NCBI GenBank assembly: GCA_013115145.1
Contig: JAAPAO010000116.1
Span: forward strand, 1 to 64,000
Source of the DNA: Perkinsus chesapeaki ATCC PRA-425
Lineage: Eukaryota; Protista; Perkinsozoa
Direction of reading: 5' to 3'
Length of the DNA: 64,000 nt
The notes beneath the pieces were generated by a model, which worked only from the letters and a program-made list of their open reading frames with translations, did no database searches and was not told the DNA's origin. A program made the translations under genes and the position numbers. Shown here piece by piece: positions 1,329 to 20,387 of this stretch (position 1 is its first letter; each line of letters starts with the position of its first letter).

Positions 1329-1774
1329 CACTATTAGAAGTTCTAATAGTGTATGTGAAGCACGACGAAGCTTGTGCTACCATACCAGTCTGTAGTACAG
1401 ACTACCCAGCCATATGCTATGGCCAACTCTCAGCCTGAGAGACCCGGGGCGACCTTCTCCCCCTTCGCTATCATACGCTCTGATGGGTAAGAGGCGCTCG
1501 TCGAGTGCATGCGTCAGACTTATGTCACGGTGTACATGCGTACGATAATCGGGGGGCCGCTGAAGGCGGTTGAGACCTTGAGTGAAGGTCTAAGAGTTTC
1601 AAGCTCGTTACTGCAGAGAGTCTGAGTGTCTCCTTGATTTCGAGGGCCTCGATTCGAGGTGGATCGCCTTAGGCGATCCACCTCAGGTGAGTCAGCTTCC
1701 CAGCAGGGCCTTCGCGAAAATTGGGAGTCCCAATTTGGGACCCCTCCCGAATATAAAATCCTGTATCATACAGG
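1329..1774. repeat. Cluster of short perfect palindromes
   Basis: Arm length/centre length: 1329-1351 (11/1), 1387-1403 (8/1), 1409-1423 (6/3), 1427-1441 (7/1), 1640-1652 (6/1), 1656-1684 (14/1), 1727-1741 (7/1), 1760-1774 (7/1). Read directly from the sequence. Confidence 0.85.
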
Positions 1775-2182
1775 CTGTATGAACCCCTGGCGCCGATCGG
1801 GGCCTTTATTCGGGGAAGAAGTAGTTCTTTCGTCGCACGTGCATATCGCTAGAATTGGCCAACTCTCAGCACAGAGCCGACGCCAATGTTGCTCCTAGTC
1901 GATCTCATAGTAACCCAACACTATCTTCTTAAGTGATAATGACGATAACAAAGGAGAGATCAAGGGGAAAAGGATTTATCCTATTCTAACCAACTAATCT
2001 ATGTACTTGCGTGCCCTTTAGCTACAAATGGGAAGTACAAGTAAACAAGTTGGATTCCGCGCACAGCAACACCAAGGCGCAAGAAAGAAAATGAACAATT
2101 GAAATAATTGAGTTCAATAAGTGGGTCCAATCATCAGCTCGAGAGTGGACTCTCCGCTTGAAAGCGGGGCTACTGCTTTTGC

Positions 2183-3425
2183 TTAGGAACCTGCCGATTC
2201 TCCGGTATTATTTGTTTCCGAAGCCATTGCATAAAAAAGAGAAGACTTATCCCAAGGGAAGAGATCTTGCGTCGAGGCGCTGCCACCTTCCAGCATGATG
2301 CCGCGCAACTTGTACTGCCGCGCCAACGCTATCTTATCAACGAGACGGGTCTGGGAGAAGAAGTAATAGCCACCCTGTATAGTTTTGTCGAGTATAACTG
2401 ATCCATTGCCCTTGGGGTCAGCGCCGAGGTCATACACCATATGAGAAAATCCTTCGCTGGGAGGGTATTTCTTCCTTGAGGGTGTTGCTATAGCGCTAAG
2501 AGGCACCTAAAGGTCGGGCAGAAGATGGTCGTCCAGCACGATAACATAACGTAAACGTTACTTGTAAAATCAAGCCCTCGAGTTTTGCTCCCGCGGATGT
2601 AGCATTCTTGATCGCCTCTTTCGCATGGTCATCCGTGTTGAATACCGGGACTTGATCACAGCTGGGCCATAGCATTACGATACTGAGGTCCGCTATCCTA
2701 GCGAGACCGCTGGCGTCCAGCACTTGCCACTCGTTGCATAGGAAGCTGAAACAAAAAATGTCATTATACGATAGGTATATATTCGTTCAGCAGTTCTCTA
2801 GGACTCAGAGTCTCAGTGAAGACGCATTACTAATGACCCCGCGATTCCGACTAGATGCTCACCTCAATGCAGATGTTAAATTCCATTTCTTCAAAATCGT
2901 GAGGACCTCCTTCAAACCCGTCATATCAGTTCGACTCCACACGGGACCCAAGACAAAGCCACTCACAGGATACTTTTTGATAAAACTTTGAACACGTGTG
3001 GTAAAAATCTTCTCGTTGAAGTGTCTATTGTCGGCAATCTCTAAACTGGCTAGGATTGACCCACTTTCGCTTTTCACCTTGTTGGAAAAGTCCAAGAAAG
3101 CCGTCTCATTCCAGGGTGCCTCGAAACGAGGCACGATACTACTATCACTCAAATGATATCCACCAAGAATGAAGCGTTGGCCTCCCATAGACAATAGCCT
3201 GTCGAAATAGGAGTCCCAAGTAAAGTCGGGCTCCTCTGGACACAACGTTTTGTTGGAGCAGAAGGGCGACTCCTTAATATTCCAAGGGTTGTAAATACCT
3301 TTGTAGAATTCTAGACGGCTAGCCGCAGCCAGTGCACTGACGGAAAGGACGTACGCAGTTGTGAGCATGATCTGGAGCCTCGCCGGATGAAGTAGCATGC
3401 CCTTGGTGAAAGACGGGAACTTCAT
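2183..3425 (-). CDS. GH18 chitinase-like secreted protein, non-catalytic, copy 1 (3 exons)
   Basis: Exons in ORFs 2859-3425, 2496-2723 and 2183-2506 with GT-AG introns. Signal-like MLTTAYVLSVSALAAA; ILASLEIAD and FIKKYPVSGFVLGP align to the GH18 SxGG and DGxDxDxE strands; C-terminal LVDKIALARQYKLRGIMLEGG..QD resembles the GH18 beta-8 region. Confidence 0.65.
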
Positions 3426-4701: not shown

Positions 4702-5557
4702 GGCTTCACCATAGGGCTGCCGTATTACGGCACGAAACTGAGCGTATCGAAAGAGCACACCTGAATCTAAGATAATCCACATATGTCACGTTATACGGTC
4801 ATCGATTTGGATGTAGTATCCACAAGCGTCACATCTTGAAAACAAAAGCAGATTCAAACACCCCAAAAGTTCGTAAATTCGTCGTGTCGTAGGCTAGCGT
4901 TAAACTTAGCGTAGGAATGGTGATACGCCACTTTCTGCGGTTAGTCTCATAATAGTGTAGTCTCCATCGAAAACAGTCTCGTGAAGGATTAGAACTTAGT
5001 GGCAGAAAACATACAGTGGCTAGGACTCGACTATTAACACTGTGCCCCAGATATATTCGGCACAAGAACAACGTCTATAGCAACGATATGACTAAGCTCT
5101 GATGAGGCCGGCGATACAACAGTGTTTCTTCGCTTCAGCATTCGTATCCTAACGCTGAATCGCTAAATCGCCTAGCGCTAATATCGGGGGTAGCCGTAAG
5201 AGAACTGTAAAAATTTTACATTTAATGCTCAGGTCACTTGGTCAAGTGGTCAAAAGAGTGGTTCTCGATGTTCGAGAGTTCTAGTTGGCGACGACAACTT
5301 GGCGTCGAATCCCAATACCTGGGCACCTCAAAGTCAGCTGGTTTAAGAAAGGTCGATTGATAGAGCGATTAAACAAACGAAGGAGGGAATCCAACGATGG
5401 TAACCGAGTCAAAGAAACAACCTGGAGCCATGATGGCTAGAGTCCATCACTATCTCAATGACTCACAATCTCAAAACAATCGTTTAATGAGCCCTACTAA
5501 GCTTTTCTCATCAACAAATAGTCATAATAAGCCTCTCCAAGCGGCAGTCCTTCACAC

Positions 5558-5672
5558 GCATAGTGGGTCACACAGCACCACAAAGAGGGTCTGCCAACAC
5601 CAAGGTCATTTTTTTTCAGCCACTAACAGCCAAAGACACTGCGGGCGGCCTACGGCCGCCCATAGGTCATAG
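5558..5672 (+). repeat. Left terminal inverted repeat (115 bp) of the MULE
   Basis: gcatagtgggtcacacagcacc...gggcggcctacggccgcccataggtcatag is the reverse complement of 12798-12911. Confidence 0.93.
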
Positions 5673-5698
5673 GTCATAGGTCTTTTCGTGGGGACAGC

Positions 5699-7487
5699 GT
5701 GATTATCTTCGATGAAATATCCATGCTCCATGATACCATAATTGAGGCCATCGACAAAACTCTGAGGTTCATCCGAGGCCAAGATGAGCTGTTCGGTGGG
5801 TGTTGTACCATTTTTGGGGGGGACTGCTTACAGCTGAGAGGGCCTGAACCTGCGAAACACGGAGAATTCGCGGAGCGTACCGTACGGCCGGTGTGGGAGA
5901 GCTCATTATGGAGGGACATGAACTTACAAGTTTACTACCTAACTCGCTTCCATCGAGGTATTCTGGGAGGATCTACTGCTACTAGGCCAGGAAGACGTGG
6001 GAGGCGGAAGCCACTCTTCAGTGGTAACGGCGTAGACGAAGATTATTTGAACCTTCTGGCTGAGCTGAGGAGCTGGAGACCAGACTCCGACTGGAATATA
6101 TCCAAACGGTCCCAGGAACTAGTCCATCATCTTGTCGATAAGGAGGGTCCACATGAACCTTCATGGTGCGCCATTACACTCTTCCGGGACAACTGCCGGG
6201 CTATCAATGATGAGCACTTAATGATCAATCCCGGCGAACTCATTAAATTTCACGCAGATGTATTTGATGATACCACCGGTGATGAAGATCTTCACAAGCT
6301 TACCATCAAGAAGAGTATCGGACTGAAGATCGGTTGCAGGGTAATCTGCAATACTAACGTTGAGCCATACATCCTCAATGGGGATATGGGAAGAGTTTCG
6401 GGATTCGTCGGTCTCACAAGGGGGCAGAATGAAGTTCACATTAAGCTCAAGCAGAGCGACTCGTTGCAGAATGTTGCGGTGCGGGTGAGCCTGGATAGAA
6501 ACTGCGAGGAGGTAGACGTTTATCCCGTGACTCAAGAAGTGTTCTCATCTGAAGGCAAGCTTCTATATGCATTAAGAAATGTACCGCTCGACCTTGGTGC
6601 GGCTATTACCTGCCATAAACTTCAAGGATGCACTCTCGACTATGCCGTCGTAGACTTGTCGCTTCGTGGAGGCCCCAATGCACCTAAGGCAGCTCACGCT
6701 GAGATCGAGAGATTACTAAGTCAGCCGTGGCTCCATGGAGCTTTGTACACTATGTTGTCGAGAGTGGGATCCTCGAGTCGCATATTTACGAAGTTTGTGG
6801 GAGATCTGGCCTTCCACAAGAAGGTTTTCTTCTCTACATCAGCTCTGGCCTTCGAGGATTGGTGTAAGCGTTCCAACGTTCTAACGCGATCTGCGTTGCC
6901 TGGAACGCCTCCATACCGCCGTCCGGTAGCGCAAGAGGATGACGACGATAATATATCCGCAAGTGTAGATTCATGGCTCGACGGACAGCCCAACCGTTCA
7001 GAAAGTGCAGGTGACCATCGTGTGATAACTCCGGAAGAATTATCAAGTATCCTGAAAGAGAGGGATGATCGACTTATCGAGTCCTTTGGAGGCATGGTTG
7101 CTAATCTACTGGTTAATTTCTCGCGAACAGGACTGCTCGGTTCGGCAGGAACGTGCCCCGTACCCCAAGCTAGCTTGAGCAACGTCGACGTAGCGACCTG
7201 CCACAATGACTCATTTTTTCGGATGGCACAAACTAATCTACCTTCATTCCACAGCCTCATGATGAATAATCCTGTAGACTCAATCCCATCTATTGATCGA
7301 ATGAAAGCGAGGGCCATGGCGGATGACAATCAAGGCTATCAGGGTTCCGATGAGACGGTCGAGCGCAGTCAAGAGACCGTGCCTTGCGAAGCACGGAACA
7401 GGAGCAGTGGGAATGATAATGATGACCTTCACGATGACACAGTGGACCGGGAAATCGATGGCTTGGACCTAAATGAGGAGCCTGACA
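5699..7487 (+). CDS. Pif1-family SF1B DNA helicase, 5'-truncated (motifs II-VI), followed by an acidic linker; inside the MULE
   Basis: IIFDEISML (motif II), FGGCCTIFGGDCLQL (III), YLTRFHR (IV), KIGCRVICNTN..LNGDMGRV, PLDLGAAITCHKLQGCTLD (V), GALYTMLSRV (VI). No GxxGxGK(S/T) Walker A upstream within the element. The frame stays open to 7687. Confidence 0.88.
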
Positions 7488-7521
7488 GTAATAAAGTTCT
7501 TCCCCAAGCTCACTACAGGGT

Positions 7522-10500
7522 ATGTCAGGTACAGAGGCTGGGCAACCAGACAACGAAGAACGATTCGCCCAATCCCCGTCCTCCAACGAAGATGAACCGG
7601 GCAGCAGCATCTCCGAAAGCAGCGGCATCCAGAGTTCTGATACAGAGGGCGATGAGATCAATTCCACTAGCGATTCCGCGTCTATAATGAGCACCGGCGC
7701 TAATCACTCTTCGAGCACTCAACGCAGCAGAGCCCCTAAAGGTCCAGGGGGCAAGTGGATGGAAGAAGCATTCCATGCGGTCAATGGGCCAATCGAAGAG
7801 GTGATAAAAGAGTACTTGGCAGGCAGACCATTTTTGACCCAAGTCAAGAGTGTTCACGAGAATCGTAAGAGACGTGAATTACGCTGCCTCCGGCGGCTTC
7901 CACCCGGTGAACCAGTAACTGGAAACAATGCTAAGCCCTCGTGGAGATTGTGGCCGAGCGATGCCTGCCAATTCTCATGTATTTTGGTGGTGGAGAGTGG
8001 CCCTCCGGGAGAGTTGCTCTGCAGCTTTTACGGCGTATGCTCAGCTGGCTCGTCTATTGATGCCTGGAAAGCACACGATCATCCTTACGATAGTCACCTA
8101 TGCAGGTAAGAGCAGCTTTTGAAGAGTTGCTTGACCACTGAGAATCAAAACATTGCCTGTTAGTTTTGGTTTAGAATCTAAATTTTAGATCTGTTACTGT
8201 TCCGCCCCCTCTGGTCGATCTAGCGGCGAGAGCAATAAGTAAGGATCCAACGCTCACAGCAGGCGACATCAAAGAACTGTGGAATGCCAAGCGTGATCGA
8301 GGGCTTCTTGGTAGTCGCGAAAGAGCATGGCTGGATCTGAAGGAAGATATGCCAGGCTACCCTGATGTCAAAGGTAGATCTAGGTAGAATGAAGACTCAC
8401 TCACGAACTGTCTTTTCCTCTCGTTAAACGGACTCAACCTAAGAGTCTCAGCCTGAGACTCTCAGGTAATATCAGGAATGTTGTCACATCAATAACTCGC
8501 CGTCGATTATATGGGCTGAAACTTGAACCTTTCCTAGAGAAGGTACAACGTGACATTGGCGAGAATCTTGCAGATCTTAACGTAAGTATGGAACAATGAA
8601 GGGCTTCCCCTGGGGTCTACGGCGAGAGTAAAGCCTACTGAGTAGACTAATGACGAACTCTTATCTCTTTTATCTACGCATGTCCAACGCCCAGTAGGAT
8701 ACTAGCCGGTTTAAATTTTGAGCGAGCCTTTGTCAATTCAATAATAAACACGGTATAATCAGCTATATCGACGACAAACCTTCATCATAACCACTGTTGT
8801 AGTATAGAGTCATAAGTATTGAGCTAGTCTCGTTGAGCACGAGAATCTATGTTCAAATAGAAGCTCGTAAACTCGCAAAAATTTTAGCCAATGTTTCTAA
8901 ATTGAAGTCCAATTGAAATATCACTAGATTTATATTATACAATATATAAGAGCTATTACACTATCACTAAAAATATAAAAATATAAGAATTACTAATGTT
9001 TAATTAATAAAATATTACTATATATATAGTATACAATAGTATAGTTATAATGCTATATTATAATATAATATTATGCAACTTATATTGTTCCTATCACTAG
9101 TAGTGATTCACTACTAACACTAATATAATAAGAATGATGCAAATGAAGGTATATAAATCTATATTAATAGTAAATATCTAAGGGAAATTTTGTAAAGCCT
9201 TGATTTCGCCGAGATTGATTGCAAATTGATTGCGATTGAATGATAACCGATTCTTACCGATAACCGATATTCAACCGATAACCTATTTGGATCGTTGCTA
9301 GGCATTTTTTGACCAGACTGCATCATATCATTATATAAACATATTATTATATAGACTATATGACTATTTTTCATGTGTGTTAAAAAACATAGATTTCCTT
9401 TTCGCTTTGTGACAGGTATCAGACATCATCGATGCTATAAAGCGAACAGGCTCAGAGGACGCCAGTGGGGTGGATGAGCACCTGCGGGATAAATCTAATA
9501 TATGCTTGATGACTCCAAATCCCACCTTGAAAGTCGACGAAGAAGGGAATCTTCTAGAAATGGCGATAGGGTTTACTTCACCCCGAATGGTGCATAATTA
9601 TTTGACTAGTGATGAGCTTGCTGCCGATGTGACCTTTAATCTGATAGCTGCGGAATGCTCGGTTTTCACCATGACCTCTATTAATGCTGCTGGAGCAGCT
9701 CGCCCAATTCTAGTAGGGTTGGTGAGAAGTGAAAACAGGCGCAGCATAGAAGATCTCCTGAAGTCTTTCCACGAGCTTATCAAGGATGCTGGTATCCGAG
9801 AATTACCTCGGATCACCCGCACCATTCAAGATGGCTCCAAAGCTCTTCATGGTGCCTTATCTACCAGCTTCGAACAAGCATCCACAAGTTGCTGCTACTT
9901 TCACTTCATGCAAGCCGCCAAAAGAAAAAAACCACCGGGGATAAGGGCAGGCTTGTGGAGTGCGCTGAAGAGTGACCTGAGGACAATAAGTAAAGCCTCT
10001 AGTCAATCGGAATTCACCTCTCTCGTCGAGCTCCTCTTTCGTAAATGGAACGAGAAAGGCGAGACAAAAGCCATTGCTTTTCTCGAAGCTATGGCAAGCG
10101 GGGAATGGTTTGATGGTGGTAGCTTCCGTTCCCGGTGGGCCGCTTGTCACAATGATGGCGTGGGTGGGAGAACGAGTAACGGCATTGAAGTATTCCACAG
10201 ATTCCTCAAGAAGACACTTCTCCGCTCTCGGAGGATGCGAACCTTATTGCAGTTTGCTTACGCCTTAGCAGGGGATGAGTGGAGATCCGTCTCGGCATAC
10301 AATAAGCATCGAGTGGATGGCAGGATTGTTCACCAGTCAGATAGGGTATCGGCTCTGACCACTGTCTCGTTCTCGCCTCTGCCGAGGACTCTTCCCCCAT
10401 CAGTGCGTGGTCCTTGTCAGAGGGCCTCTTGCCGCAGAGATGTCTGTTGTAAAGCATCTCATTACTTTGGTGTTGGTCAACACGTGTACGTATTCCGCGG

Positions 10501-11238
10501 CGATAAACCAAGTCGCGTTTCGGATTCCAGAATTGGGGTGGCTGACGACAAGCTATGTCTGAGAGTAACACAGAGCTACGATAACTTTGAGGTCGCGAAG
10601 AGGATAATGGACACCATATCACTTGTTACCTTTACTACTACTGCTGCTGTCACCCGGCTTCCCCGGGATGGAGGTCCAAGGTGCACATGTGAATCTTACG
10701 CAGCAAGAAGCAAGTGCCCTCATGTAGTAGCTTTGGGACGCCACTTCGGAGTTGATGACCAAGTAGCGTGGCAGAGAGCTGAAGCAAAACTTCAGAGAAA
10801 GCTTAGCAAAGGTGTAGCCGGGCCTGGTTTGAGGTTGAATGAAACTACGCGCTATGGAGGAACACGCCAGAGCCAGGCGCAGGCCCTCCGCGCCACCCAG
10901 TCCAGTATAAGAGCGAGAGGGCTCGATTGCTTCGATTGCCTCCGCATTCTATCCCTCTATCAGCTGAGCTACCTAAGATTAAGAAAAAAGAACTATCAGC
11001 GTGCTGTGGAGGCTATTTTGACTCACCCGCAGTATACTGCTCAACGAAGAAATGCGCCTCCACTGGGTGGTGGCATATTGACTGCGCTGAAGCTTGGTGT
11101 ATGGCAACGGGTTACCCATTGCCTGATCTGGCGAATCGCAGAAAGCCTTGGCACTGTCCGAGATGTAGACCTACCGGTAAAGATTCGAGAAAGAGGCGAA
11201 GGGATGAACTATGTTCCAGCTCAGAGTCCTCGCCCTAG
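7522..11238 (+). CDS. MULE transposase with N-terminal C..C..HxH Zn-finger-like region, DDE domain, SWIM and C-terminal PHD finger (5 exons, ~882 aa from ATG 7522)
   Basis: Exons 7522-8105, 8189-8373, 8466-8581, 9416-10904 and 10964-11238 join in frame across GT-AG introns with matching phases. Motifs: AADVTFNL (D1), TIQDGSKAL (D2), CCYFHFMQ (CxxH), TSNGIEVFH (E), SWIM CTCESYAARSKCPH, PHD CC...C.TKKC..WWHIDC...WHCPRC. Confidence 0.85.
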
Positions 11239-12182
11239 AATCTTTCATAGCGAGCTCTTTGGCAGTATATTTGCAGTATTTTGGGGGCTGCTACATCAAT
11301 AGTTAGTTTGTGAAGATAATGACAACTGATGATTCCATGCATTATGCACGACAGTATCATGATGACACTACCGATAAGTATGCATTATTTACTAATTCGT
11401 GAATTTTTAGTTTCGATCAGCGCGCTTCTGCTGTTGAGCTGCCCAGTGAGTCACTGATGATTGCCCCCGAGACCATATCCAAGGATGATTGATCTCCAGG
11501 GCTCTAGTAATTCGCCGGTTGTTCAATGTTACTCATTCAATGAATTTTACTGTTGCTCACTGAGCAATGCTCAGACTGCATGATCCGCTCACGATGTGAC
11601 TCCAGTTGGCATCCACCCCACGTGACACGACGGTGTACGCATTATGTCCTCTAATACCATCTATAGTATAGATTCTAATCTCGTGCTCTGGGGGGAGACT
11701 CTTCCCCTTTGCCGCATTCCGTCGCTCAATTTAGCATGTGCAATTTCGGGGAGTATAATTCATCATAAGAGACGAATAACCCGTAGGATTCGAAGCTTGC
11801 TGGGATGACTGGCACCCCAAATACCTTGAAAACTTTAAGTTGAAACGCGCGCAAAAAATGTGCTGCGGTACGGGTTTGAGCGGCGCCTAGGACGTTCCTT
11901 TGACTGACGAAGGCGACGAACTATTCCCTTGATTACATACAGTAGTGTTAAAACGACTACTAGCTCCTACTTCGCCTTAGCACGCTTGTCCTACCCTTGG
12001 TAGACTACTGGGTAGTACGACTACTACCCTTGGTAGACCGCAGTAGCTGCAGTTACTTGTTCAAGACTCTAACTTGAGTTACTCACGCTCGTGATGCTTA
12101 TCAGTGTCCTGGTAATGGTATTCTGATGACCCTCTTGTACCTTTGCGACAGTCGTCGACCGACTGTATACGATAGTCTATAC

Positions 12183-12640
12183 CTAGAACACCAAGTCTTC
12201 AACATCCAGCTTGCTCACCAAGCTTTTCAACAAGCCTTGTTGAGTACTGTGATCTGTTGCTATTGTCAATGCAACGATCCGAGAAACTAATTCTTCGAAA
12301 GCTCGTTTAGTCAACTGGTAGAGCTCCCGACAAGGACGCAGAACAACCCAGGTTCGATCCCTGCAATAGCCATATGAGAGAATGATTGGGAACGTAGCTT
12401 GCGGGTGGCTGGCTGGTATCGCTTAAGTAATGCCAAGGGGATAGCTGTTGTTGCCTTGGGAATCTTAGCCTACAAGCGCGACTCTCGGGCATACAGTATT
12501 GTTCATGCGCACACGTGCAGCGCGAAACGTTCGTGCAAGTGCAAGAAAGTTGAAAAGTGAGCACACAAAGGTAGATCCGGGCATCTCTTAAAGAAAGTCT
12601 CTTCCATGAGCTTCTAACTCGCGTGATGAAGTCCCGCAAG
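12183..12640 (-). other. Possible second, convergent gene or remnant in the right arm of the MULE
   Basis: Stop-free helical-looking frame 12360-12183 (DRTWVVLRPCRELYQLTKRAFEELVSRIVAL...LDVEDLVF*) behind a plausible ttgcag acceptor, with exon-like segments further upstream. No family recognised. Confidence 0.22.
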
Positions 12641-12797
12641 GCTCGATCATACTTCGAAGGGCAAGTCGTCGAGTGGACATTAGTATAGCAGCCTATTTTT
12701 GCGTCGACAAATACGACGGCCCTCTGTGGCCTCTGAGGGCAAGGCCGAAGGTGGCGAGACTTTCAATATTTCCGCATTAGGGCCTCGTCAGGTCATT

Positions 12798-12911
12798 CTA
12801 TGACCTATGGGCGGCCGTAGGCCGCCCGCAGTGCCTTTGGCTGTTAGTGGCTGAAAAAAATGACCTTGGTGTTGGCAGACCCTCTTTGTGGTGCTGTGTG
12901 ACCCAGGATGC
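12798..12911 (-). repeat. Right terminal inverted repeat (114 bp) of the MULE
   Basis: Reverse complement of 5558-5672; followed directly by the TSD CCTTCACAC. Confidence 0.93.
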
Positions 12912-13522
12912 CCTTCACACTCCCGAAAAGATGAACACCTCATCGCCTTCCCGTTCACATTTCGTGAATCACAAATGACTAGGATGTAGTCAATGGGCAA
13001 GTTGTCCAGGGTTCAAACTATCCTTGTTGCAGTCCGTCAATTGCTGAGGAAAAGGCGCCGATCGAGGGCCTTATTCAGGAAAGGAGCAGATCCTCCATCG
13101 CACGTCACGTGCGGCAGGTGCACTTCGCTAAAATTGGCCAACTCTAGCACAAAGCCTACATCAAGACGCAAGAAAAAAATTGAAATGACAATTGAATTCA
13201 ATGCATGGGAGTCGGCCGCCACGTGCTAGAGTGGCGTAGCCGATCTCTACGTGGCGCCGTAGAGCCTGGCCACCCCTACGATTGCGCTCTTAATTTAGCG
13301 CACGCCAATCTAATCTATTTACTACTTTGCGAGTTGAGTTAAATGAGACATGGGTCGTTTAACGGTGCAAGATATAAGTTAGTTATAGTTATAGGCCAGT
13401 ACCATCGTGTCCAGTGAACTAGACGATGAGTCTTGATATCTGTAACTGAGTTGAGCCCCGGCTAGGAACACTGGAAGTCTGACCGCTGCTTTTCTGTCAG
13501 CAAGATATAACTTCCTCCCCAA

Positions 13523-15452
13523 ATGTCATCAACTGTTCCAGAATCAGGGACTGCTGAGGAAGGTGTCGAACACATCACGGAGGAGACTGCAGTGGCGACT
13601 GATCCATCCCAGGTAGCCTTCAGACGATACAAGCCCTCAGGGAGTCATTTTAGGGAACCAACTCTCAAATTCCTGAGGTAGAAACCAAAGCAACGCCTGC
13701 CGCGGGGGAGAAGAGGCCGCGAGAGGATGAGCTGGAAACCAGCGTTGAGTCTTCTAATGAAGAGCCGCCTGCTAAAAAGGTCGCTGGTGAGGGAGAAGGG
13801 GAAGTAACTAAGAAAGATACTGAGGTGCATGCTTCAACCGCGGATACCACTCCCGAAATCAACGATCTGCCGACTGAAGCACCGGGGCCTGGTAGTACTG
13901 GCTGCTGATGAGGTACTCTCTACCGTTCGCCTTAGGAGCATCTCCAGCTGCCCCCATCGGGCCTTTGCCGAAGACAAGTGCCTCGCCCATGGCTGTTCCC
14001 ATTGGCCCAGCTGGGCCGCCGCCGCTCCCGTCCATGTCTCATCCTTCTCACATGACCAACCATCAATGGGGAGCTGATGCTGGACCCTTCCGTGATAGTG
14101 TGAAGGTCCCCCAGCACTGTGTGGCTCAAATCATCGGACGCGGTGGTGCCAATTTGATGAGTACTCGTAACACTACTAGATGCCACATTGAGGTGAGTCG
14201 CTGAGGCCACTAGGTGTCCGAAGTTTTACGTCTTAGTGCGATCAACGTACCAAAGATGAGGGTTACTCTTTCTTCCATATCGATGCGGAGACCAAGGACA
14301 GTCTGATGGTAATAAGGAATCATTCGCTGTAGCATCTTTGCTGACATTTAGCGTGGTGTTCGAGCCATTGAGCGACAGACTAAGCCAATGCACCCTCTTG
14401 AGGGGGAAGTGCAGCAAGTCGTCATTGTTCCAGACGAGCGCGTTGGTGACATCCTCGGGCCTCGGGGATGCGTTGTCAAGGTAAGCTTGGTGGAAAGAGT
14501 CGCAGTTGTTGTTGATGGCGTCCAGGTTATATCTGACCAGACCGGTGGTCGAATCGACATACAACAGCGTGGCCTCCAACGTGGCGAACCTCGCGAGTGC
14601 AGAGTGGTCGGAACGCCCGAGGAGGTTCAAGCTGGCATCCAGATGATCGAGGGCATCCGAGATGGGAGCATCGACGTCAAGTCTATAATCAGGGACTTTG
14701 AGGAGGCTAATCCAGCCTTCAGGCGCGAGCAGGAGATGCGGAACTCGGGAGGCGGGTGGATGTCGGGCGGCAAGGGGAATGGTCCTATGTGGGACAGCCC
14801 CTACGGTGCGCACAACTCGATGCCACAGCAACAGCAGCAGTCACACTATGGCTCTCAACCTGGCATGGATCAATGGTCACATCTCTTACCGGCATCAGGC
14901 CCGGTGGACAGAGCTGTTATTGATGTGCCTGCCGACTGCGCAGGGATGGTGATTGGTCGAGGTGGAGAGAATATTAAGGGTTTACAGGCTGAGTGTAGCC
15001 TATCTGAATGCCAGATAGAGAAGGGTATCGATCAGAGAACACCTCGTAAGATGACATTACAAGGCCCGGCAACTGGTGTGCAAGCGGCGCTCATGCAGTT
15101 GTCTATGAAGACCAACGGCAGGATTGTCACCATAGTCCAGCCGCAACACGGAGGGTATCAGCCTCAGCCGATGATGCAACAACAGCCACAACAACAACCC
15201 CAAGGGATGATGCCGCAAGGTTATGGTATGCAACAGCAGCAAGGCGGGTATAATATGGGTATGCCCTACCAGCAGCAGCAACAACCACAGCCGGCTCCTG
15301 CTCCTATGGACCCAATGGCTCAATACTACTCCCAATGGGCCAATTATCAGCAGCAAATGAATGTTAATAACCAGCAGAACGCCCAGGCGTGGAAGAACTA
15401 CTACGCTTCAATTGGCAACCCCCAAACGCCTCCATACCGTGGCGGCCAGTAA
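13523..15452 (+). CDS. Triple-KH-domain RNA-binding protein, FUBP/KHSRP-like (multi-exon)
   Basis: KH loops VAQIIGRGGANL, VGDILGPRGCVVK and AGMVIGRGGENIK; Q/P/G/Y-rich C-terminus with YYSQWANY. Exons join over short GT-AG introns from ATG 13523 to TAA 15452. Confidence 0.85.
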
Positions 15453-15549
15453 CTACGTCTCCTCTTCCTTCTTCGACTGCCGCTCGCATGCTCGGACATA
15501 CTGGTCCAGAGGGTAAGTCTACTAAAGCGTTTTATAAAATTTGGTGACT

Positions 15550-16130
15550 ATTATTAAGGTGACGGGCTGCTGCTGGTGTTGTTGTTGGCCTCCTCCTCGA
15601 TGGTGTAGCAGCCTCTTGTTGGCGTCCTCCTCCTCCTTGCGTCGCGCTGCGTTCTCATCAGGGTCTCCTCGGGTCGGCTTCTCACAAGTTTTCGCTCTTC
15701 CCTCTATGGTTTGCCCTCCGCGTCTTTCGCCCAAGCTCTCTATCTCTCGCGTCGTTCAGATCAGACTCCTTACAACCGACCGATCGTCTCGTGTCCAGCC
15801 ATGTAAGAATTCAGCTTGATCTCTCATCAAGTGAGTAAAGGGTCCACGACTGCTCATCTCGCTTTGTAGGACATCGCACCCGGTGCTGCTGCCGCTTGTC
15901 TTTGCGTTTCCGGCTTGTTCCGTGATGGTGCGTCTTGTTGCTTTTTCGCTGGTCATCGTTATGGTAAGGGCTCCTCCCCTCAATCTTCGCCGTGGACGAT
16001 ATCTTTCAGGTCCCCCTTATCGAGTTCGATCATTAATGTTTAGTCGGCTTTTGCCGAGCTGCCTGAGTGCCCCACTTTTCCTCGTTGCGTTGCATCAATC
16101 CGTCCAGTATCCTGTTCTTGAAGCACTCTC
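15550..16130 (-). CDS. Hypothetical small basic, low-complexity spliced protein, head-to-head with the succinyl-CoA ligase gene
   Basis: Exon-like frames such as GRSPYHNDDQRKSNKTHHHGTSRKRKDKRQQHR bounded by gt..ag. Gene model not resolved; boundaries approximate. Confidence 0.25.
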
Positions 16131-16225
16131 TGTGTGCTAGCTTCCCCGCTCTAGTCCTTCAACCTACCCCTATCCGCGGGCCCCCACCAATTCCCGTCAC
16201 TGCAGTTTTCCGACTTCCTCGTCCC

Positions 16226-17546
16226 ATGTTTTCCTCTGTGGTGCCGCGCAGCTCCGGTGCTGCCGCCGCTCCCCTGTCCCGTCTTGCCGCTCGGGCTTTT
16301 TCCTTCACTGCTCGCGTCTGGGTCGACAAGAACACCAAGGTCATCTGCCAGGTAGGATGCATTCATTGCATTTCAGCAGTCCGTCGGTTAGGGTTTGACC
16401 GGCAAGCAAGGAACCTTCCACACCGCGCAGGCGATCGATTACGGCACCAAGATGGTCGGAGGAGTTAACCCTAAGAAGGCCGGAACTACCCATAATGTTG
16501 GTGGAAAGGTAACCACGATTGGAGCTCAGGTTCGGCTTGGTGGTGGATTATATCACTTTAGGACTTGCCCATTTTTGCTAATGTGATGGAAGCGCGACAA
16601 GCTACAGGAGCTGACGCGACCGTCGTTTACGTTCCTCCTCCAGGTGCGGCCTCAGCTTGCTTGGAGGCCATCGAGGTAGACGTACTCTAGTCGTGGAAGT
16701 GGCTCATTTTGTTTCAGGCTGAGATACCGCTGTTGGTCTGCATCACGGAGGGCATTCCTCAGCATGACATGGTCAAGGTCAGTTGGTGACGCGAAGTTTT
16801 TCGGTAATTATCGCTATCAGGTTAAAGCGGCGCTGAAGATGGCTGGAGGCAAGACTCGGCTCATCGGCCCCAACTGCCCGGGCATCATCAAGCCTGGTGA
16901 ATGCAAAATCGGCATAATGCCAGGATACATTCATAAGAAGGGCAAGATCGGAGTGGTTTCCAGGTGAGCGCTTCGGAGAACTCGAAGGTGAAGAAGCTGT
17001 GTGTTTTTGACAGGTCCGGCACCCTAACGTATGAAGCTGTGAACCAAACGACTGAGGTTGGTTTGGGTCAGAGCACCGTCGTTGGCATCGGCGGTGACCC
17101 TTTCAACGGTACCAATTTTATTGATTGTTTGGAGAGGTTCGTAGAGGATCCTCAAACCGAAGGTGACCAATCCTTCACCTGATACCGTCTATCCTCTTCA
17201 TGTTCAGGTATAATTTTAATCGGCGAAATCGGAGGTGCTGCTGAAGAGGAGGCCGCTGAGTGGTTGAAGCAGCATAATAAGGAGAAGAAGCCCGTCGTCT
17301 CATTCATCGCGGGAGTAACTGCGCCGCCTGGACGAAGGTAGGTGTTCGAAAGCAAGTCTGTGGAATGAGAAAGTGCTCTTTAGGATGGGTCATGCTGGAG
17401 CCATCATTTCTGGTGGCAAGGGGACAGCTGCCACAAAGATCGCCGCCTTGGAGGACTGTGGAGCTAGCGTGGTGCGTTCACCTGCCGACTTGGGCGTTAG
17501 AATGCTCGAGATGTACAAGCAGCGTTACCCCGACAGATCGATATGA
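16226..17546 (+). CDS. SUCLG1: Succinyl-CoA ligase alpha subunit, mitochondrial precursor (multi-exon)
   Basis: Ser/Arg/Ala-rich presequence; [59 protein letters not shown] and active-site [11 protein letters not shown]; introns of ~50 nt. Confidence 0.96.
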
Positions 17547-17934
17547 TCGTTATATTCATCCCTACTTCATCATAAATGCTTATAATAACATTGTGTCTGA
17601 TGATGCTCAACAGCAATAGTTTTTAGAAAGTGCTCTTGTGTCTTTAGAGACTATCAAGGTTATCAAAGATCTCCATTGAGGTTGAGTTGTTAAGAGTGAA
17701 GGTTATCGTGACAGACATACAAGCTTCAATAAACATACGATAAAGAACGCGTACTGCGAACGTATTCCGTCTAAAACGCGATGTGCTGTCAACTGGCGAA
17801 TGCTTGCAAATTTCAATAACATATAGTGTGCGACGTGGAGGCCACATCATGCTCGCTAGCCATGAAAACAGTCAGGCTACACCTTACCGCTACCACCTTC
17901 AAAGTTGTCCCTTCTCCTGGAACCCTGATATATT
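17530..17934 (+). repeat. Block duplicated at 20809-21057 (copy A)
   Basis: 17530-17702 matches 20809-20981 with 2 mismatches in 173 bp; 17855-17934 matches 20981-21057. Confidence 0.92.
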
Positions 17935-18114
17935 AAAGTCCTTCTCGTCTGGTGTTTCGAAGTCACCAACGGTGACTTCAACGGTGTCACACATTTCGTC
18001 TACTGTCGTCGTCCAACCCTATCGCCTTGGGCTCGAATAGTCTCACGTGCTTTAAGAGGTATCCAACTGTCAGAGAGAATCTTGTTTAATAACGTCGTAT
18101 TCGAAGCCCTATAA

Positions 18115-18848
18115 ATGCTACCGAGCTTCAACCTGCTGTCGTTGGTCGTTCTGACAGTACTAGGCCGTACCAACGGTCAGGAACCCATTACCCAACCATC
18201 AGCAGATCATCCAACTTTCATGTCAATGAAGGGTAAGGCATTTCCAAACACGTAATCCAAATCCGACCATTACTGCATCTTGGTACTTTACGTTTTTTGA
18301 AAACCTTCGAGTTTTCTTCCGCCAGCATGGAAATAGGTGCTCTTCGATCCCTCATCATTTCTCAGTCCGGCCACCATATGCTCGCTGTTACCAATTTCAA
18401 GTATGTTACAGTTGTAGATAAAGTTCGCATGATATTCCTTTCAGCAAATTCATCAGAATTATCGCCCCATAGAAATTGAAGGACAACGAAGACACTGAAG
18501 ATTCGCATACTAGATCGTCACCGCGACCAGAAGAGACACCTGGAAGTCTTGGACAATCGCCAATTCCGGTAGTTGTCCGTATTGAATACAAGGATATGAG
18601 TATCAAAGCATAGTCCCAGGGAATAGAAGTTGAGATCTGCCATCCTCGCGACGCCGGTGACAGTCACTATTCGCCAACCATTGCATCCGAAGCTGAAGAG
18701 CACTCAGTTGCACAGGCTCAACAGACGCAGCATTCGACTTGTCCTTTTTTCTCTCCGCGCTAACTTCGATCATGAGATTTCACTACAGGATACCACCATA
18801 TCTAAAGATGTATCAGAGGTGCAGGGAGATGCCTTTATAAGCCATTGA
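18115..18848 (+). pseudogene. Possible disrupted secreted-protein gene
   Basis: ATG 18115 MLPSFNLLSLVVLTVLGRTNGQEP (signal-peptide-like) and a G|gtaagg donor, but the downstream frames do not join without stops. Confidence 0.22.
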
Positions 18849-19018
18849 CGATAAGACATAGCAACAAAACACGCAACACACATGAAAAAATATGAAGTTG
18901 GACGACCTTACTCTGAAAAGTGCACCGATGGGCAAACTGAAGTGATTCACCGGACTCTAAACTTGGACGTCAGCTCGTAGTGTTCTGGGAGCGGTCAAGT
19001 GAAAACACAAGGAAACTC

Positions 19019-20387
19019 TCAGTAGAGGGTCCGGCCCGACTTGGCTCGCGAAAGCAGTGCATAAAGTAGAGAAGACTTATCCCAAGGGAAGAGATCTTGT
19101 GACAAGCCGCCACCACCTTCCAGCATTATGCCGCGCAACTTGTACTGCCGCGCCAACGCTATCTTATCAACGAGACGGGTCTGGGAGAAGAAGTAATAGC
19201 CACCCTGTGTAGTTTTGTTGAATATAACTGATCCATTGCCCTTGGGGTCAGCGTTGTAATCGTAAACCATAAGAGAGTATCCGGTATCCGAAGAGAAATA
19301 CGTGGCTCTAGCGAGAAGGGGTACCTGAAGAGTCGGACGAAAAATGACCCTGAAGCAGAATTACTGTAGTTGAACTATATTGTAAGTTGACATACAAGTT
19401 GATCAGTAAACATATACACTCAGACAATTCTTCACCTGTAAAATAATGCTTCCAGGTTTTGCTCCAGCGATGGTAGCATTCTTGATTGCTTTTTTGGCGT
19501 AGGTGTCCGTGTTGAATACCGGGGTCTGGTCATCGTATCTGGGCCGTAGCGCAACGAAGTTGAGGTCAGCGATCCTAGCGAGGCCACTATTGTTCACCAC
19601 TTGCCAATCGTCGCATCCGAAACTGAAACCACACGATCGTTATGCAGTGAGCAGCGCCATTTGAAGTGCAAGGGTATCTCTGGTTGAAGACTCAATGACA
19701 CTGAGCAAGCGCTCACCTTAATGCAGATATCAAGTTCAATTTCCTCAAAGCCGGGAAGACCTTCTTCAAACATCTCAACTGGGTCTCAGTTAGCAGGGGA
19801 CCAAACGCGAAGCCGGTGACGTTATACTTCTTCAGAAAACTCCGAGCACTCCCCATGAAAATGGTCTCGTCAAAGAGTTCAGTATCAGAAATCTCTAGCC
19901 AGGCCAGAATAGACCCACGTTTGCCTTTCACCTTCTGAGACAAGCTAGAGAAAGCCTTCTCCTTCCAGGGCGGATCGAAGGGGAAATCTTGTATGATTCT
20001 ACTATCATTCAATGCATATCCACCAAGCATAAAGCTTCGGCCTCCAATGTCCAATATCCTGTTGAAATAGGACTCCCAGGTATAGTCCGGGTTCTCTGGG
20101 CACAACGTGCTGTTTGTGCAGAATGGGGCCTCCTTAATGACCCAGGGACTGTCAACACCTTTGTACACTTCCAAATGGCTAGCAGCCGCGAATATACTGA
20201 CGGAGAGGATGTACGCACTCATCAGCATTAGGAAGGGTCGCATTGGAGTGATGTGACAATTGTGCCGGGAACTCATCAGCCGGCATTGCTCTATAGCCAA
20301 TATGCTATTCCCCTGCCGCGTAGAGGCAACATGCGCCATAATGGCGCACAAACTAAGCGTAACAACTTTGCTTCTGAGTCTCATCAA
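19019..20387 (-). CDS. GH18 chitinase-like secreted protein, non-catalytic, copy 2 (3 exons)
   Basis: Same exon structure as copy 1; FLKKYNVTGFAFGP at the DxDxE position; last exon ~97% identical to copy 1 over 141 nt. Confidence 0.68.

Follow-up and report, generated by a model that had tools for sequence, protein, structure and literature searches.

Can a Mutator-like transposon carry a Pif1 helicase and its own DDE transposase in a single polypeptide? The question is raised by a gene in the first 64,000 nt of contig JAAPAO010000116.1 of the shellfish parasite Perkinsus chesapeaki ATCC PRA-425 (assembly GCA_013115145.1, forward strand; this whole stretch is called the window below), for which a preliminary description had proposed one spliced protein of ~1,470 residues that joins a Pif1 helicase, a MULE transposase, a SWIM finger and a PHD finger. 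We find that the whole gene is enclosed in a complete Mutator-like element of 7,354 bp (5558-12911). Our reading, in which we have good confidence, is that this is a Mutator-like transposon of a Pif1-MULE fusion lineage and that the present copy is an internal-deletion derivative, which by its sequence appears to retain helicase motifs II-VI, a C-terminal extension, a linker, the transposase N-terminal domain, the DDE core and a SWIM-type finger.

The boundaries of the element and its transposase both place it in the MULE superfamily. Terminal inverted repeats bound the element: the left one (115 nt, 5558-5672, plus strand) is complementary to the right one (12798-12911, minus strand) at 97-98% in a repeat search and at 96.5% over 115 nt by blastn, and pairwise alignment recovers the right one as well. 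An identical 9-mer, CCTTCACAC, abuts both inverted repeats externally (5549-5557 and 12912-12920, no strand assigned), giving a perfect target-site duplication of a size within the 8-11 bp expected. Pfam MULE (PF10551) matches the open reading frame (ORF) 9470-11302 (4.2e-09, 37.2 bits against a cut-off of 27.6, profile positions 4-98 of 99). Both inverted repeats hold a GC-rich palindrome, GGGCGGCC-TAC-GGCCGCCC (5643-5661 and 12809-12827), and the 3' portion of the element beyond the gene (11239-12797, no strand assigned) is non-coding, with short ORFs only. In DNA runs of the species the element appears as an exact copy at a word depth of ~115, equal to that of its flanks, as expected of a single copy; a search of these runs for joints or an empty site of the element returned none and only the exact copy was seen. 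In the strain sequenced, the element is fixed and present once. One diverged contig of 357 nt, at 10333-10558, was also obtained from these runs. Some other contigs match only the outer ~40 nt of the inverted repeat (5564-5605) and then diverge, with loose ends at 5604/5605, which suggests other genomic elements with the same termini and different interiors.

How well is the gene itself defined? The six exons of the preliminary description (5699-7487, 7529-8105, 8189-8373, 8466-8581, 9416-10904 and 10964-11238, all on the plus strand) do sum to 4,431 nt with only a terminal stop, and all five removed segments run from GT to AG. The public annotation of the locus, FOL47_000784 (1,509 aa; hereafter P0001), which is a gene prediction and not transcript evidence, coincides with this model over 1,377 residues and shares its introns 1-4, the first of them being the 41-nt one at 7488-7528 that joins helicase to transposase; it differs in starting at ATG 5723 and in leaving 10905-10963 unspliced, reading through to 11302. 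The most informative comparison is with a 4.7-kb Logan contig of run SRR12548988 (L006), which has ~36% protein identity to the window gene. Removal of intron 2 (83 nt, 8106-8188), intron 3 (92 nt, 8374-8465, also in the public model) and the AT-rich intron 4 (834 nt, 8582-9415) brings the window gene into colinearity with the intronless ORF of L006, which has no intron at the position of intron 4, and the alignment is free of gaps at all three, so that introns 2, 3 and 4 are validated. Exons 3 (8189-8373) and 4 (8466-8581) give open joins and lie within the same alignment. Exon 2 (7529-8105), comprising the second half of an acidic and serine-rich linker and the transposase N-terminal domain, is colinear with the L006 ORF and with positions 9968-10423 of a P. 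marinus copy (L005). The putative intron 5 (59 nt, 10905-10963) gives an open join, is not in the public annotation and receives no support from the relatives. Within intron 4, an AT-rich short segment at ~8930-8982 rises to a word depth of ~12,800 in the DNA runs, against ~118 around it, and represents either low-complexity sequence or a short repeat of very high copy number.

Comparison of the relatives gives good support to the union of a helicase and a Mutator transposase in a single gene in this lineage. In L006, the C-terminal half of the helicase is followed by one uninterrupted ORF of 573 codons (1413-3134) that is colinear with model residues 505-1011, that is, with a conserved motif of the extension, the acidic and serine-rich linker, the transposase N-terminus and the beginning of the DDE core, and the alignment crosses both the proposed junction and introns 2-4 without gaps there. 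Identity to L006 is ~36% in the helicase half and ~36% in the transposase half, the similar divergence that a unit evolving together would show. The P. marinus copy L005, although decayed, preserves this order from helicase through extension and linker to transposase N-terminus. On the helicase side its frame ends at 9763, and on the transposase side a frame opens only at 9779, such that at least 17 nt must go; removing a 40-nt GTAAGG...CTAG segment (9739-9778) in the same linker leaves 811 nt of open frame, which matches an annotated gene of 270 residues spanning 9421-10271. Two further P. chesapeaki loci carry the parts separately: L004 (215-2218, JAAPAO010000064) has the N-terminal 335 residues of the helicase and L007 (10810-14993, JAAPAO010000097) has the extension and the transposase. 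They share a 3' end of ~800 nt at 94% and diverge at the same base, which marks the element terminus. The two have the appearance of deletion derivatives that complement each other and stem from a second helicase-MULE family.

Several observations weigh against this reading of the locus. The reading frame of L006 is itself shifted near 1350, and an in-frame stop interrupts its DDE core; none of the relatives retrieved is an intact, full-length fusion bounded by both ends. In P. olseni (L002/L003) the helicase is complete and bears the same extension, and its frame closes inside the linker; no transposase occurs within 10 kb, and the ORF downstream of it (412 aa) is unrelated and without a Pfam match; the helicase module therefore also exists alone, and the P. 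olseni gene could be an ancestor, a remnant, a free-standing gene or a domesticated one. In the window itself both frames are open over 7495-7684, where a 1-nt frameshift could mimic an intron, and two small RNA-labelled runs had a word share of 0.00 with the gene stretch, one of them (X1) giving no contig. The single Pif1-MULE gene of the preliminary description holds for the lineage, through L006, L005 and the public model, but not as a source of a working helicase-transposase in this copy: a functional fusion of ~1,470 aa from this locus is unsupported, because its helicase is truncated (see below) and the two RNA-labelled runs do not contain the stretch.

The junction in this copy, the least secure part of the case, is a putative 41-nt GT-AG intron (7488-7528, plus strand, GTAATA...GTCAG) that carries the helicase frame into the transposase frame with an open join, as it does in P0001. 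The helicase frame does run without a stop through the acidic tract, as had been described, and it stays open to 7685, while the transposase frame is open from 7495. This is why many open joins are possible: 39 GT-AG pairs of up to 200 nt give an open fusion, the proposed pair and 38 others, among them pairs with an acceptor at 7534 that could equally be used in place of 7528. Removal of the 41 nt thus yields the open fusion that had been claimed for it, with the same intron in the public model, but the openness of the join is unremarkable. No other donor and acceptor in the region are as good as GTAATA...CAG, which resemble those of the validated introns 2-4. Perkinsus introns are reported to measure 39-1622 bp, mostly <100 bp, with GT/AG ends (PMC3101222), a range into which 41 nt falls.

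Could the linker instead have been continuous ancestrally, with no intron at 7488-7528 and a frameshift making the copy a pseudogene broken twice, by the 5' deletion and again here? One indel would suffice where the two frames overlap, chance GT-AG joins are as plentiful as the count above indicates, the copy is already a deletion derivative, and L006 encodes the linker continuously, without an intron at the junction. The quality of the splice signals, the ordinary length of the segment and the stop-free remainder of the 4.4-kb frame all speak against it, as does L005, in which removal of 40 nt between GT and AG is needed at the same place: the L005 frames do not overlap and a frameshift therefore cannot link its helicase and transposase sides. 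Programmed -1 frameshifting was considered by eye only, and no canonical slippery heptamer was seen after the last stop of the -1 frame (7492-7494). We judge the frameshift explanation to be unlikely.

Two separate products are the other way to read the junction. In this copy, and perhaps in the family, the transposase would then be made alone from ATG 7522, which opens an ORF of 195 codons, while the helicase remnant would form an upstream ORF, closing at 7685, that is either separate or not translated; the transposase transcript would arise by spliced-leader (SL) trans-splicing at AG 7517-7518 or 7527-7528, or from an internal promoter. Perkinsus mRNAs are indeed SL trans-spliced (PMC3101222), the helicase part is already dead in this copy, and the P. 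olseni homologue is free-standing. Against this, if the 41 nt stayed in, the helicase and transposase ORFs would share 166 nt in different frames, L006 has extension, linker and transposase in one unbroken ORF, and gene predictors joined the parts in two species. This explanation, too, we hold to be improbable. On the balance of these sequence comparisons we lean towards 7488-7528 being an intron, the remaining weight being split between a frameshift and a transposase separately initiated, or trans-spliced, from ATG 7522.

The helicase part of the window gene (5684-7487, plus strand; delimited by Pfam and by alignment to the relatives) consists of a 5'-truncated Pif1-family helicase with its C-terminal extension and continues halfway into the acidic linker. 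Position 5699, at which the preliminary description began the model, is a GTG and not a start codon, 27 nt inward of the left inverted repeat; the helicase frame opens only at 5666, and its first ATG (5723) comes immediately after motif II. Pfam PIF1 (PF05970) matches the ORF 5699-7687 (3.8e-10, 40.2 bits against a cut-off of 25.9) at profile positions 106-188 of 223, beginning at motif II (FDEIS, 5708-5722), with motif III at 5816-5836. The relatives L002 and P0003, by comparison, match the profile from position 2 (L002 over 2-180). Walker A, the P-loop of motif I, is carried by P0003, by the L002 ORF of P. olseni (472-2868) and by P0004; it is absent from this copy, and a search of the whole 64-kb window for N-terminal helicase homology found none. 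The boundary is placed exactly by L001, which encodes P0003 and has 84% DNA identity to the window: its base 713 aligns with window base 5684, where homology begins, 12 nt beyond the left inverted end, and upstream of that point L001 has a further 342 nt of coding sequence that include the P-loop GIAGAGKTH. The missing part amounts to ~113 residues, among them the Walker A ATP site. Between inverted repeat and helicase lies the deletion junction (5673-5683, plus strand), with an extra ATAGGTC-type 7-mer repeat. By this alignment, a deletion has evidently taken out the 5' region, the start codon and motifs I and Ia, so that only 11 nt now separate the left inverted repeat from helicase codon ~114.

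With its start codon and Walker A deleted, the copy cannot hydrolyse ATP as a Pif1 helicase. The fragment boundary, being a deletion relative to L001, is not a capture boundary. The deletion is probably recent, since the remaining 4.4-kb frame is still open after short GT-AG introns are removed. What remains of the helicase is recognizably of Pif1 type beyond the Pfam match: the C-terminal RecA-like 2A/2B half (motifs IV-VI, query ~150-340) matches ordinary Pif1 helicases with PIF1 and Pif1_2B domains, although Pfam itself calls no 2B domain in the helicase ORF, and the nearest helicases outside the Perkinsus relatives are ordinary Pif1 proteins (E 1e-14 and weaker). The extension that follows is lineage-specific, with its conserved motif at 7211-7333 in the helicase frame. 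Over 138 codons compared with the 84%-identical L001, dN/dS of the helicase is 0.066 (dS 0.84), a ratio that points to strong purifying selection.

A helicase fragment that abuts an inverted repeat also invites an explanation of Pack-MULE type, in which an ordinary Mutator element acquired, on a single occasion, part of a Pif1 gene from the host or a Helitron, and the apparent fusion would be fortuitous and peculiar to this copy; MULEs are known to acquire host gene fragments (PMC6446971). Such cargo would be copy-specific and unselected. Here, the order of helicase then transposase recurs in divergent relatives (L006, P. marinus L005 and the L004/L007 family), dN/dS is low, and the boundary is a deletion. 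The recurring order, the similar divergence of the two halves and the selection together make a one-off Pack-MULE capture very unlikely, and we give it almost no credence. Nor does a Helitron source fit, no Helitron Rep domain being found in P0001 or in the ten nearest outside helicases. A Helitron origin of the element was rejected on similar grounds, P0001 lacking a Rep domain and the element having inverted ends and a 9-bp duplication.

The transposase part is apparently intact through the DDE core, which lies with the SWIM-type pattern in exon 5 (9416-10904, plus strand; placed by Pfam MULE and motif positions). The candidate catalytic residues are D at 9626-9628, D at 9830-9832 and E at 10187-10189, with a CYFH motif at 9893-9904; we infer their catalytic role from the known signature of the family. 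L006 shares the first-D, E and (C)xFH motifs, the E motif being conserved in L007 too. Downstream of the core, CTCESYAARSKCPH at 10682-10723 fits the SWIM pattern CxCxnCxH (as CxCx9CxH), and UniRef names P0001 a SWIM-type domain protein; the pattern that had been noted is thus present, but the Pfam SWIM score stays under threshold (E 0.11, 12.5 bits against a cut-off of 19.6). The PHD finger proposed for the C-terminus fares less well. The putative last exon (10964-11238, plus strand), a call from pattern, ends the model with a Cys/His-rich tail (10996-11166) whose spacing is PHD-like (C4HC3) except for an adjacent first cysteine pair. Pfam gave no PHD match for this tail, the best hit being another zinc finger at E 0.37, and a PDB sequence search gave no match; a Foldseek search with its AF2 model, which is weak (pLDDT 61), also gave none. 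Neither L006 nor L007 has the tail when compared, and the PHD assignment is unconfirmed.

Has such a fusion been met before? The preliminary description had suggested a search of protein databases for co-occurrence of Pif1 and MULE domains. The ESM Atlas returned MULE-only or PIF1-only clusters at lead-level scores, and none of the nearest matches has both domains. A protein search with the transposase ORF alone gave nothing in the 335-1067 aa range, one with P0001 residues 1-1400 returned only P0001 itself, and one with the L006 ORF returned a single P. chesapeaki protein, P0151. A literature search on links between Pif1 or other helicases and Mutator, and on Perkinsus Mutator elements, found no description (Repbase and Dfam lay outside this search), and the Pif1-MULE fusion appears to be undescribed in the literature. 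A survey of 50 MULE groups lists FAR1, PMD, SET and OTU among accessory motifs, and PHD in Rehavkus, while the word helicase is absent from it and it has no Perkinsus or Alveolata entry (PMC6446971).

Compared with known MULE/MuDR elements, the Perkinsus element shares the PF10551 DDE domain, 115-nt inverted ends, the 9-bp duplication and a SWIM-type CxCxnCxH pattern after the core (features tabulated in PMC6446971), and differs in having a Pif1 helicase joined N-terminally to the transposase. Rehavkus, whose members are MULE relatives with a PHD finger, would offer a parallel to the Cys/His tail, but only if the unconfirmed PHD call held. AcademH and KolobokH are likewise DDE cut-and-paste transposons that encode a helicase, and AcademH target duplications measure 9-10 bp (PMC10045372, PMC10799480). 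They belong to other transposase superfamilies, however, and their helicases are listed in PMC10799480 as DEAD/Helicase_C of superfamily 2 (SF2), not Pif1 of superfamily 1B (SF1B).

Helitron RepHel proteins hold a Pif1-like SF1B helicase in one polypeptide with the nuclease of the element, which is the parallel that the preliminary description had drawn. PIF1 is also listed among Helitron-derived domains (PMC10799480). In Helitrons, however, an HUH Rep lies N-terminal to the helicase and there are neither inverted ends nor a target duplication, whereas in the Perkinsus element a DDE MULE nuclease lies C-terminal to the helicase and both inverted ends and a 9-bp duplication are present. Pfam found no Helitron_like_N (HUH Rep) domain in P0001, and with Mutator ends and duplication in place the parallel goes no further than analogy. 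Among bacterial DDE transposases, those of Mu, Tn7 and IS21 have an NTP-driven DNA-binding partner (MuB, TnsC and IstB respectively). These partners are separately encoded AAA+ target-selection proteins, unfused and not SF1B helicases, and here too the likeness is one of analogy.

What might the fused motor do? In the lineage, the DDE domain would carry out ordinary Mutator cut-and-paste at the inverted ends, and the Pif1 motor may help a DNA step; the role proposed here is conjecture, our best guess. Cellular Pif1 promotes long-tract synthesis in break-induced replication. The step we would prefer is long-tract repair synthesis across the excision gap, in which the element would be recopied from the sister chromatid; such gap repair would help to restore a 7-kb donor copy faithfully, and deletion derivatives such as the window copy, L004 and L007 would be the products expected when it fails. 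Alternatively, the motor might open the GC-rich palindrome in the ends (5643-5661). The window copy itself, if transcribed at all, as it might be by a promoter within the inverted repeat, would start its product at the internal ATG 5723, or at 7522 to make the transposase alone. It would yield a dead helicase stub with an apparently intact transposase; full function would require a complete family member in trans, and the copy probably depends on intact relatives.

Taken to its fullest extent, the proposal is that of an undescribed Mutator class with a single Pif1-MULE polypeptide, in which the helicase would be obligatory for transposition or donor-gap repair and of which the window copy would be a defective, trans-mobilised member; we put this forward tentatively, as a possibility that deserves attention rather than as the expected outcome. 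To our knowledge, eukaryotic cut-and-paste transposases are generally held to need no motor of their own; helicases characterise Helitrons and, as recognised more recently, AcademH and KolobokH. A Pif1-Mutator fusion conserved under purifying selection across Perkinsus would amount to an independent recruitment of a helicase by a DDE transposon: if true, a DDE counterpart of RepHel and the third independent helicase gain by DDE transposons after AcademH and KolobokH. The fusion would also be a testable system for the role of a motor in end opening, target choice or donor-restoring long-tract repair. The contribution of the window copy is a fused gene model within one element that has both inverted ends and an intact duplication, which several other copies lack, and it is a clear example of the deletion derivatives of the family. 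FOL47_000784 is better annotated as a truncated transposon gene than as a host gene.

A number of smaller features were recorded at these loci. The palindrome core GGCCGTAGGCC is found twice, at a spacing of ~33 nt, in the 3' subterminal sequence that L004 (2116-2161) and L007 (14891-14936) have in common, and is a possible candidate for a transposase-binding motif conserved across divergent families. Next to the L007 element, an ORF of 1,472 aa (15320-19785, minus strand) has reverse transcriptase and integrase domains of the long terminal repeat (LTR) retrotransposon type. Rfam and tRNA scans of the 64-kb window gave no matches. Just outside the element in the window, 5418-5441 on the minus strand holds a spliced-leader-like CTCTAGCCATCATGGCTCCAG followed by GT, with 18 of 22 positions matching PmaSL1; DNA-run contigs over a repeated zone at ~5446-5504, where word depth is 2-5x that of the flanks, contain a near-perfect SL, CTGTAGCCATCTTGGCTCAAG, again followed by GT. 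The sequence at 5418-5441 is probably a relic of an SL RNA gene or a repeat, as reported for P. marinus. Finally, two direct repeat pairs, one of 234 nt at 89% and one of 99 nt at 75%, connect 2219-2658 with 19049-19532, ~16.8 kb away; they lie well to either side of the element region and probably represent gene duplicates.

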